Shown here: positions 9,601 through 12,600 of the stretch, one piece after another
Layout of the letters: each line of letters starts with the position of its first letter
How positions within the stretch are numbered: position 1 is the stretch's first letter
NCBI GenBank assembly: GCA_037379345.1
Contig: CM074512.1
Span: 50,303,597-50,367,596, forward strand
Origin: Perna viridis
Taxonomy: Eukaryota
Reading direction: 5' to 3'
DNA length: 64,000 nucleotides
Position numbers and translations under genes: made by a program
The notes under the pieces: generated by a model
The model's input: only the letters and a program-made list of their open reading frames with translations
Databases searched by the model: none
Told to the model about the DNA's origin: nothing

Positions 9601-12600
9601 TGAATAAAAATATTTTCTACGACTTTATTGACACATACCATCGTTTAAATTGTCTTAAATGACTTGCTCATACATTTAGCCAAACGGCTTCTCCCTAAAC
9701 ACTGAATCGTTAAATTCTGGTCAGATTTTAATTCTCTGTGCCAATATTTACATTGTAAAAAGTCAGCCATGTTTACAGTGATCGGGTTGCTAGGAGATGT
9801 TGTTTACGTTTAAATGGTTTGTCCAAAAACTGAAGAACCCAGAATGCATTTCAGCGTTATTTTGGATATCTCAAATTTATTTTACGCGAACAACGTACAA
9901 TACCGAGAAGTTGATCAAGCAGACCATTGTCACCGGAGTTCAACAGGAACTTACGAACTTCATTTATAAACAAATTGTCCCATAGAAAGCAACATGACGG
10001 ATATTAGTATGGGATTTTCCCGTAAGAATTTGTTACGCATGATTTAAGCTAATAAGCGATTCGTTGGTACTAACATGTCATGCATATATGCAAACTATCT
10101 TCATATTAAATAAAAGAGAGACAACTCTAGCGATAAGTCCCGACGGTTTAAAAAGTAGAGCTTCAATTCGAAAATGTGTTGTATGTGACGTCGAGTATAG
10201 TCATTGTGTGGCAGAATTATGACAGAAACAATCTAAGTCTTCTCTTCACATAACCTGCCATCACTAGAATGTGAACTAACCTGATATCATTTGTATTCAT
10301 ATTAACAATATTAGTGATAAAGTTGTCCTTGACAATAACAGCACGGAGTGACTTCCAATCAGACACCTGCTCTCCCAACAGGAGGCAGATAGATTCTAGT
10401 GTCAATTTGACAACCGGTGGAGGATTGTTCATAGATTTGACTTCTACTAAGTCCTTCTTCTTGATGCCTTTGACAGCTGTAAATGCCAATAATTATCATC
10501 AATATAGGTGTAGTGGTATTACTATTAGGTTAATGTGTACTAAGTTGCAAAGTTTGTTTTTCAGTGGATAATACAGTGAAACCTGTCTAAACTGAACCCT
10601 GAATAATCTAAAAAAAAAAATGTCAGAACCAGACACTATTTACTTCCCTTTACATCAATTTAAATGTATTTTGAACCTTGGTAAACCAATCACCTGTCTA
10701 AACTGAACCATTTTTTAAGTCCAAAAGGTGTTTGGTTAAGACAGATTTCAATATATATCCAGTTTTTCTTCCAACACCTATACAAAATGAGACCTTGCAA
10801 CTTCATGTACACACGGCCAAGTTAAAATACCATTACCCCAAGAGTCACTGTTAGAATAGTTAGAGCAGCTCCAAATCCATAAAATATATAAACATGCAAA
10901 ATTAGAAGGAAAAGCACTAAGTTTCAGAGTATAAAACACATTCCAAAAATGCAAATCAATTTTTGGATTTTCTCATGCAAGTACCATTCTAACACTGCTC
11001 AAAACTACTTCACAATTGGGTATCACTGCATATCAGCACACAACACTTACGTAACATCTTCAGTCTTGTAATTGATGATTAGAGAAATGAAGTTGTCCTT
11101 CATTATAATACTCCTCAGAGATTTCCAGTCAAAATCTTGTTCACCCAACATGAGGCAGATAGATTCGATAGCAAGCTTAACGAGAGCGGGAGGGTCACGC
11201 AGTGCTCTCACTTCGACAAGGTGCTGTCGTTTGATGCCTTTCACAGCTAAGGACAAAATAAAGTGCAACATAAAGGTACTAAGCATGCAATAAACTAAGG
11301 CAATTCACCAAAAAATGCATAATACAGGAGAGAAAATGAATGCCTATGATGCTTTCCAATATGTCTATGGTACCCATGACAACATGCTATATATATATAA
11401 ATGTTTAGTCTCTTCCTTTGTTAAATCAATTAATCTTTCTTGATTATTAAAGATGGACCCAGTTACAGTAATTAGTTGGACATATAATGTAGTATTATCA
11501 ATATCCATGATACCAAGAAGTGGAAAGCATCATTAGCAATATCGCAATATCGGGAAATAAGGATTTGAGGTAGAATTTTGATATGCAGGAAAATCAAGTT
11601 TAAGCAAGGTATAATCATTGTAAACTTCCAAAGGAAGGATCTCAAGTTGAAGAAACAAGCAAGATAAAGACAGTATTTTTCTTCAACAAAAAAAAAACAG
11701 GAAAAGAGTTCAATATACTTGTATTGAAATACCAAAGAACATTAACTGAAGGAACTATTGTGATGCAATGCAGCATTTCTGGCATCTTTTACAGTTTTCT
11801 CTACATGCAATATACCCTTAGATCTCCACAGTGTGTTTTGTTAATCCTGAACCTCAGTTCATGCAGTTCAAGTTATACTTTATCATTTCTCTGTTTATAA
11901 TTGAAGTTAATATCTTATAATCTGTGATACAGGATGTAAAAGAACAATAAATACATCAAAAGTCTTGATAAAGAATGTAATTGTATACATGTATTTCAAA
12001 AACAGGTTGTTAAAATACTTTCTCTGTGGTGTTGTGTTTTTTGTTTTGCTTTTTGTTTCTTGAAAAAAGGTTTAAAATGTAGCAGATAAGACAAATGATC
12101 TCTGAACACAATTATCATTTCACAAATATGACATTTTAATACCAAAAACAGTAGGACACAAGCCTTGACACAATCAACAAACCTTGTTGGGCCTCCATAA
12201 CAGCTGGTTCTACTTTAGCCAGGTCTTCCATTACATTGCCCTGCTTCTCATTGATTACTTTAGTCTGTTCCATCAAAGCTACCTGAATTTCTTGAGAGGT
12301 CACCTTCTTACGTTCAGCTTCCTGTTGGTCTTTCACCTGTGATAAATGGATTAAGATTCACAGAGTTTTTCATACGCATATAGTTTGTTATGAGAATTTT
12401 TTTAGATTCCCTTCTAAATGCAGAGGAACTGGATTAAGAAAATATTTTGCAAATATTGATTCCAATACGAACACCTAGAAATGTCAAATAATATATTAAC
12501 CGATTTATCTATCCCTTGGCGATTCCGATGAAAAAAGTCTTTTAGTCATATTAGAATAGAAATAATTCATGTAAGACATGGTGTTGTGCTCATTTACACA

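Follow-up and report, generated by a model that had tools for sequence, protein, structure and literature searches.

A pair of tandem, probably mutually exclusive exons for the first half of the dynein-1 microtubule-binding domain in Perna viridis, with counterparts in other lineages

Dynein-1, the main minus-end motor of animal cells, has a single heavy-chain gene and is usually regarded as one invariant motor; that it can serve mitosis, the positioning of organelles and long-range transport along axons is commonly credited to adaptors and accessory chains. The 64,000-nucleotide stretch of the Perna viridis genome analysed here (assembly GCA_037379345.1, contig CM074512.1, positions 50,303,597 to 50,367,596; hereafter the window) carries a dynein-1 heavy-chain gene on its minus strand, in which two homologous exons lie in tandem, an upstream exon A and a downstream exon B, each encoding the first half of the microtubule-binding domain, the foot of the motor. 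RNA from this species supports mutually exclusive, regulated use of the two. The best joint explanation, to which we give a probability of roughly four in five, is that each dynein-1 mRNA takes either A or B between the same two constitutive exons, and that both versions are old and kept by purifying selection, with their ratio set differently from sample to sample; it would further include a choice of exon made by splicing regulators and two feet that differ in their hold on the microtubule.

Each of the two exons is 196 nucleotides (nt) long, lies between an AG and a GT (with the donors gtaagt in A and gttagt in B), and enters in phase 1 and leaves in phase 2, such that its first two nucleotides complete a split codon and its last two begin the next; none of the 64 full codons of either exon is a stop. 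At the protein level 39 of these 64 codons are identical (61%; BLASTP E = 9e-31, well past what chance would give), or 40 of 66 when the split codons are included, and at the DNA level identity is 64%. The split codon at the 3′ end is completed by the first nucleotide of the exon at 8982..9317 and reads Thr after A and Ser after B. When the exon combinations are read by script, the frame stays open with A alone or with B alone, inclusion of both brings a stop 38 codons into B, and skipping of both brings one after three codons. Because 196 is not a multiple of three, and both or neither leads to an early stop, only messages with a single one of the exons encode a motor, and frame incompatibility is by itself sufficient to make these the only productive ones. 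A first-pass annotation, made from the letters of the window alone, had proposed this arrangement, including the lengths, splice sites, phases, frame constraint and 40 of 66 identical residues; all of this holds in the sequence, and the borders that it assigned to the flanking exons (12183 and 9317) are correct by both sequence and RNA.

RNA was mapped on positions 8250-13100 from two raw stranded RNA-seq runs (X21 and X22) and from the contigs of two older runs (X5 and X10). All four junctions that the first-pass annotation had singled out for checking, namely those joining each exon to its upstream and downstream neighbours, are present (Table 1), and all four have CT..AC ends when read on the plus strand, corresponding to GT..AG in the direction of the gene. 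The read pairs of the stranded runs lie in a single orientation, in agreement with a gene on the minus strand. In both X5 and X10, A and B are each represented by one contig of 252 nt, consisting of the exon and 26 and 30 nt of flanking-exon sequence with no mismatches, and such paired contigs are the bubble in an assembly graph that a substitution-type splice event makes. The share of exon A was 0.33 in X21, 0.06 in X22, 0.61 in X5 and 0.31 in X10 (X21 versus X22, Fisher p = 0.001), so that the ratio of A to B varies about ten-fold between samples; in three of the four samples exon B predominates, and it is therefore no minor curiosity. In addition, 17 runs that are likely to be RNA (from 8 studies of the same organism, their run type being guessed or unknown) contain a fraction of 0.34 or more of the words sampled from 10281-11246, a region for which the intron-less exons A and B alone would give about 0.34. 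Neither a joint from A to B (11051>10476) nor one skipping both exons (12183>9317) was among the best-supported joints listed.

That the gene is a dynein-1 heavy chain follows from similarity scores along the locus. A neighbouring AAA exon at 15021-15530 scores 316 bits against human DYNC1H1 and 88 bits against dynein-2, and exons A and B align with the first half of the microtubule-binding domain of human DYNC1H1 (residues 3296-3359), with 83 bits (E 1e-21) and 77 bits (E 1e-19), respectively, as opposed to about 20 bits (E > 1e-3) for dynein-2 and scores near noise for the axonemal chains. The earlier assignment of the segment to the dynein-1 microtubule-binding domain is thereby confirmed, as is its placing of H6 in a shared downstream exon, which encodes the rest of that domain (helices H5 and H6). 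A six-frame search of the whole genome (723 Mb) returned exons A and B as the sole close matches, the next-best being 42% identical; there is a single dynein-1 gene in the genome and no paralogue able to supply the exon B reads. A self-comparison of all open segments in the window revealed no further duplicated coding exon.

Relatives of the pair were collected as exon-sized open frames from genomic contigs, found with the exon peptides in a large protein collection. Tandem pairs of the same length and phase with AG/GT borders occur in at least four other lineages, represented by loci L001-L004, L005-L008, L009 and L017. The first of these is a close relative, in which protein identity to the window exons amounts to 83% for A and 86% for B; in L005-L008 the intron between A and B is just 212 nt. 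Across lineages, protein identity is 62-81% for A against A, 62-72% for B against B and 50-62% for A against B. In trees of 104-125 exon peptides, from which protein fragments identical to human in this region were excluded, the A-type exons of five lineages form one clade (SH-aLRT, the Shimodaira-Hasegawa-like approximate likelihood ratio test, 99 and 95), and the B-type exons that carry the motif KKKD group together with a support of 89; all of these are quick-tree values. Measured against L001, exon A has a ratio of nonsynonymous to synonymous substitution rates (dN/dS) of 0.08 (dS 0.99) and exon B one of 0.04 (with dS saturated at about 1.8), and both exons are under strong purifying selection. 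Between the window and L005 the alternative exons are 62% identical, compared with 75-88% for the flanking constitutive exons, a difference that fits specialisation of each copy.

The order in which the two types arose can be glimpsed in lineages that depart from the common arrangement. On the scaffold of L017 (ENA ERZ23498638), an A-type exon at 614-805 is followed at 1057-1248 not by a KKKD B type but by an exon of the ordinary type (KKHH ... NFSTEDI). Because this second exon resembles that of single-exon animals, the A type looks derived or added and B looks to descend from the original exon, which suggests that A is the added copy and the KKKD form a later change of the original. A further lineage, with a compact genome (L015/L016; L015 5049-5240, Logan SRR22558388), has a single, B-like exon (RKKDIQEI), and would either have lost the A copy or never had it. 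In L001 the exon downstream of the pair (6864-6987 and 8179-8398) is divided by an extra intron, which the window gene, with its single exon at 8982-9317, does not have. A search with the downstream-exon peptide for spliced A or B forms in other species returned fragments of the canonical type only.

The first-pass annotation had also held that vertebrate DYNC1H1 has a single such sequence, and this did not survive. One of the proteins matched, P0046, is part of a protein from the teleost Coryphaenoides rupestris, and the contig from which it derives, L010 (GCA_002895965.2), carries the same 196-nt exon twice in tandem, both copies with AG/GT borders. The second teleost exon type is also found in P0024, P0074, P0081 and P0134, and it forms a clade of its own adjoining the ordinary vertebrate exon, so the teleost pair is probably a separate and independent duplication. 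The apparent second duplication of the same exon in teleosts is a hint that variants of this kind were selected repeatedly.

Of the helices of the microtubule-binding domain, it is H1 that shifts as the motor goes from weak to strong binding and back. With A or B sitting between identical constitutive exons, the two proteins differ only within the exon-encoded part, in 25 of the 64 full codons and in the 3′ split codon; this region builds helices H1-H4, which a model of the exon peptide (mean predicted local distance difference test score, pLDDT, 77) places at residues 6-14, 20-32, 40-47 and 52-57. By alignment to DYNC1H1, exon residue i corresponds to mouse residue 3293+i, the mouse numbering being two below the human. 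Published structural work gives the main tubulin contacts as H1, H3 and H6 (PMC4298687), and on binding only H1 moves, together with stalk coiled-coil 1 (CC1), H2, H3, H4 and H6 being a pre-set surface (PMC6629372). On H1, mouse K3298 (exon residue 5) has been proposed to switch between E3289 of CC1 and β-tubulin (PMC4987762), and K3299 (exon residue 6) and R3337 (exon residue 44) adjoin β-tubulin D427 and tubulin D163 (PMC6629372).

It is directly behind these tubulin-facing lysines that the two types part: the B foot has Lys-Lys-Lys-Asp where vertebrate dynein and the A foot have Lys-Lys/Arg-Gln-His. Scored in all four lineages that have both an A and a B type (the window, L001, L005 and L009), residues 7, 8, 15, 37-38 and 59 separate the types (Table 1). 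The first-pass annotation had described the differences as clustering in H1 and the H1-H2 loop, and this is true of part of them, since 8 of the first 19 positions differ in this species; it overlooked a second cluster in H4 and beyond, where 7 of the last 13 differ, compared with 5 of 23 in the H2-H3 core. From the position and conservation of the type-specific residues, which lie just after the H1 lysines (7-8), in the H1-H2 loop and after H4, it is a reasonable inference that the two feet bind microtubules differently.

How a cell would choose between the exons is suggested by the introns. In all lineages the stronger polypyrimidine tract is that of exon A, which also has a consensus donor; in three of the four samples A is nonetheless the less abundant form. 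An intron block of about 45 nt directly upstream of it (11247-11290) is conserved with L001, and upstream of B nothing is conserved. This block contains the hexamer TGCATG, which four of five lineages have upstream of exon A (at -42 in the window, -46 in L001, -42 in L005 and -106 in L009) and three have downstream of it (at 72 nt in the window, 57 nt in L001 and 94 nt in L009). As RNA, UGCAUG is the recognition site of Rbfox; under the established position rules, such a site is repressive when it lies upstream of the exon, which would explain the samples in which B dominates. The Rbfox-type sites around exon A are thus the best candidate for the means by which splicing regulators would make the choice, and we offer them as a lead only. 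When the genome was searched for an Rbfox gene with the Pfam model Fox-1_C (PF12414) there was no match, and the controls likewise gave none. Conserved complementary intron elements of the docking and selector kind were not found: the inverted repeats are short, weak and not conserved in L001, and duplexes of intron 1 with either exon have best energies no better than shuffled controls (z -0.8 to +0.6).

Table 1. Exons, junctions and motifs of the dynein-1 exon pair, residues that separate the two types, and the teleost pair (window coordinates unless another contig is named)
Feature	Position	Strand	Description
Upstream constitutive exon	12183..12332	-	end of stalk coiled-coil 1; last 1 nt belongs to a split codon; RNA joints 12332>12753, 12183>11246, 12183>10476
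Exon A	11051..11246	-	196 nt, upstream member; encodes H1-H4, A type (Q7 H8 L15 D37 F/L38 Y/F59); junctions 12183>11246, 11051>9317
Exon B	10281..10476	-	196 nt, downstream member; same part of the domain, B type (K7 D8 M15 M59); junctions 12183>10476, 10281>9317
Downstream constitutive exon	8982..9317	-	H5-H6 and start of stalk coiled-coil 2; first nt finishes the split codon
TGCATG (Rbfox-type motif)	11284..11289	-	42 nt upstream of exon A, within the conserved intron block of about 45 nt at 11247-11290
Second TGCATG	10974..10979	-	72 nt downstream of exon A, in the A-B intron
Junction into exon A	12183>11246		X21 12 reads; X22 1 read; X5 contig depth 39.9; X10 contig depth 9.8
Junction out of exon A	11051>9317		X21 3 reads; X22 1 read; X5 contig depth 39.9; X10 contig depth 9.8
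Junction into exon B	12183>10476		X21 14 reads; X22 22 reads; X5 contig depth 25.3; X10 contig depth 21.6
Junction out of exon B	10281>9317		X21 16 reads; X22 12 reads; X5 contig depth 25.3; X10 contig depth 21.6
Exon residue 7			A type Gln; B type Lys
Exon residue 8			A type His; B type Asp
Exon residue 15			A type Leu; B type Met
Exon residues 37-38			A type Asp then Leu/Phe; B type variable
Exon residue 59			A type Phe/Tyr; B type Met
Coryphaenoides rupestris exon copies	L010 1037-1232 and 1416-1611		dynein-1 tandem pair, same exon

Several observations weigh against reading the pair as a regulated choice between two different feet. The RNA evidence covers this one species; the word regulated rests solely on differences in ratio, the tissues of the samples being coded, and rare transcripts with both exons or with neither may lie among the 27 weaker joints beyond those listed. 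The case for Rbfox is tempered by the L017 contig, in which no TGCATG was found, and by the statistic itself, for the chance of finding the hexamer in three of four independent lineages is about 7e-4 at the observed background rate, uncorrected for a motif that was picked post hoc. As for the feet, A and B share the tubulin-facing K5 and R44, both have a positive residue 6 (Arg in A, Lys in B), and the net charge is +1 in A and +2 in B, so that the earlier claim that the differences change charge is right to the extent of a single unit. These last points, together with the co-occurrence of exons A and B in every RNA run that holds the locus, would be expected if both isoforms were made but the feet were biophysically equivalent, the pair being kept by neutral partitioning of expression, or by a splice choice that tunes the level of dynein via nonsense-mediated decay, and not to provide two kinds of motor. 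We consider this unlikely, though it is the most serious of the competing accounts. Interchangeable sequences are hard to reconcile with the persistence of Q7, H8, L15 and D37 in A and of K7, D8, M15 and M59 in B, held apart across distant lineages, with the A-type clade and with the low dN/dS in each type; moreover, the alternative exons have diverged more than their flanking neighbours, as specialisation predicts.

Two other accounts can be set aside with more assurance. One of the exons might be a decaying duplicate that is spliced in as noise, and the single read at each exon A junction in X22 would be in keeping with this. Each exon predominates in one sample or more, however (A with a share of 0.61 in X5, B with 0.94 in X22), both are intact with canonical splice sites in five lineages, and their dN/dS values span 0.04-0.08; the suspicion that contaminating DNA had entered the RNA contigs is countered by the intron-less 252-nt contigs and the stranded junction reads. 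With both exons expressed, intact and low in dN/dS, a dead or decaying duplicate was rejected as very improbable. Least probable of all, with no observation in its favour, is an artefact of assembly, whether from alleles or haplotypes misplaced in tandem or from exon B reads that belong to a second dynein-1 gene. This too was rejected, given that the copies are only 64% identical in DNA, that the same tandem order is found on independent contigs of other species, and that the genome has no other close match and that, in RNA, A and B are spliced to the very same flanking sequence.

The preferred account, of one exon out of two per message, can be extended. It is possible, in our tentative and somewhat doubtful estimate, that a broad invertebrate group shares an old, splicing-controlled choice between two dynein-1 feet, which would differ in affinity, load response or the reading of tubulin modifications and would be set per cell type, possibly by Rbfox, with the teleost pair standing apart. 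A division of labour between neuronal and mitotic motors, and heterodimers with mismatched feet, are speculation.

The surroundings of the pair contain several repeats. In the intron that follows exon B lies an element of about 640 bp (window 9561-10201) with 28-nt terminal inverted repeats (9561-9588 and 10174-10201), which attracts reads from both strands and in many variants, with a raw depth several-fold that of the exons and a summed contig depth tens-fold higher; it is a multi-copy repeat resembling a miniature inverted-repeat transposable element (MITE). A short repeat in the A-B intron (10518-10679), with depth on both strands, joints that go back or lead to the opposite strand, and loose ends, is probably multi-copy as well. 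At 6673-7042, within a dynein intron, a short tandem repeat gives rise to overlapping open frames with repeated peptide units. Among the proteins collected, P0047, P0059, P0108, P0140 and P0176 have four or five tandem, complete modules resembling the dynein microtubule-binding domain (Pfam PF12777, positions ~56-227) without AAA modules, and P0047 has an additional N-terminal Hemingway/CFAP97 domain.

Some part of this has been noticed before. A mutually exclusive exon was published for the cytoplasmic dynein heavy chain SmDHC1 of Schistosoma mansoni (Pillmann et al. 2011, PMC3228551), and a later paper stated that in some dynein genes the motor domain is subject to alternative splicing, and mentioned the S. 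mansoni case again (Kollmar 2016, PMC5100056). [quoted passage not shown] The features given fit the window pair, and the two may be the same exon, although neither paper states what portion of the protein is encoded. Full-text literature searching yielded no report in which an alternative exon of dynein-1 is located in the microtubule-binding domain, its expression documented or its function investigated. In a catalogue of 236 human tandem-exon-duplication substitutions, neither dynein nor DYNC1H1 occurs in the main text (PMC8373072), and in a survey of human mutually exclusive splicing the sole match to "dynein" is the title of a dynactin paper in the references, DYNC1H1 being absent (PMC5740500). 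The human substitutions resemble the window pair in being homologous, strongly conserved and of great age, whereas the latter is invertebrate, with a separate pair in teleosts. The pair is probably also present, though unremarked, in automated isoform annotations.

Other systems offer instructive parallels. In myosin, too, one motor gene yields motors with swapped track- or nucleotide-handling elements by means of tandem exons of equal length and phase, but there the motor family and the track are different, there are several clusters with many alternatives, and the mechanical consequences have been demonstrated, whereas the dynein gene has one cluster of two exons known from sequence and RNA. 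The flap of DNAH7 (Lacey et al. 2019, PMC6629372) is a precedent for changes in the microtubule-binding domain that alter how dynein engages the lattice; it is an 18-residue insertion that distinguishes separate genes, in contrast to the substitutions that splicing of one gene brings about here. Docking and selector pairing of the Dscam exon 6 type (cited in PMC5740500) has the same outcome, one exon per cluster, but the conserved complementary intron elements on which it depends were not found in the window gene. The window pair is thus a well-supported case of a known type of event, with partial prior notice.

A regulated and conserved exchange of the affinity-gating helix would place a further layer within the dynein motor itself. 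Exons A and B also provide two naturally occurring variants in which the binding domain's influence on affinity, run length and sensitivity to tubulin modifications can be studied, and the teleost pair may allow the question to be addressed in a model such as zebrafish, if zebrafish shares it.

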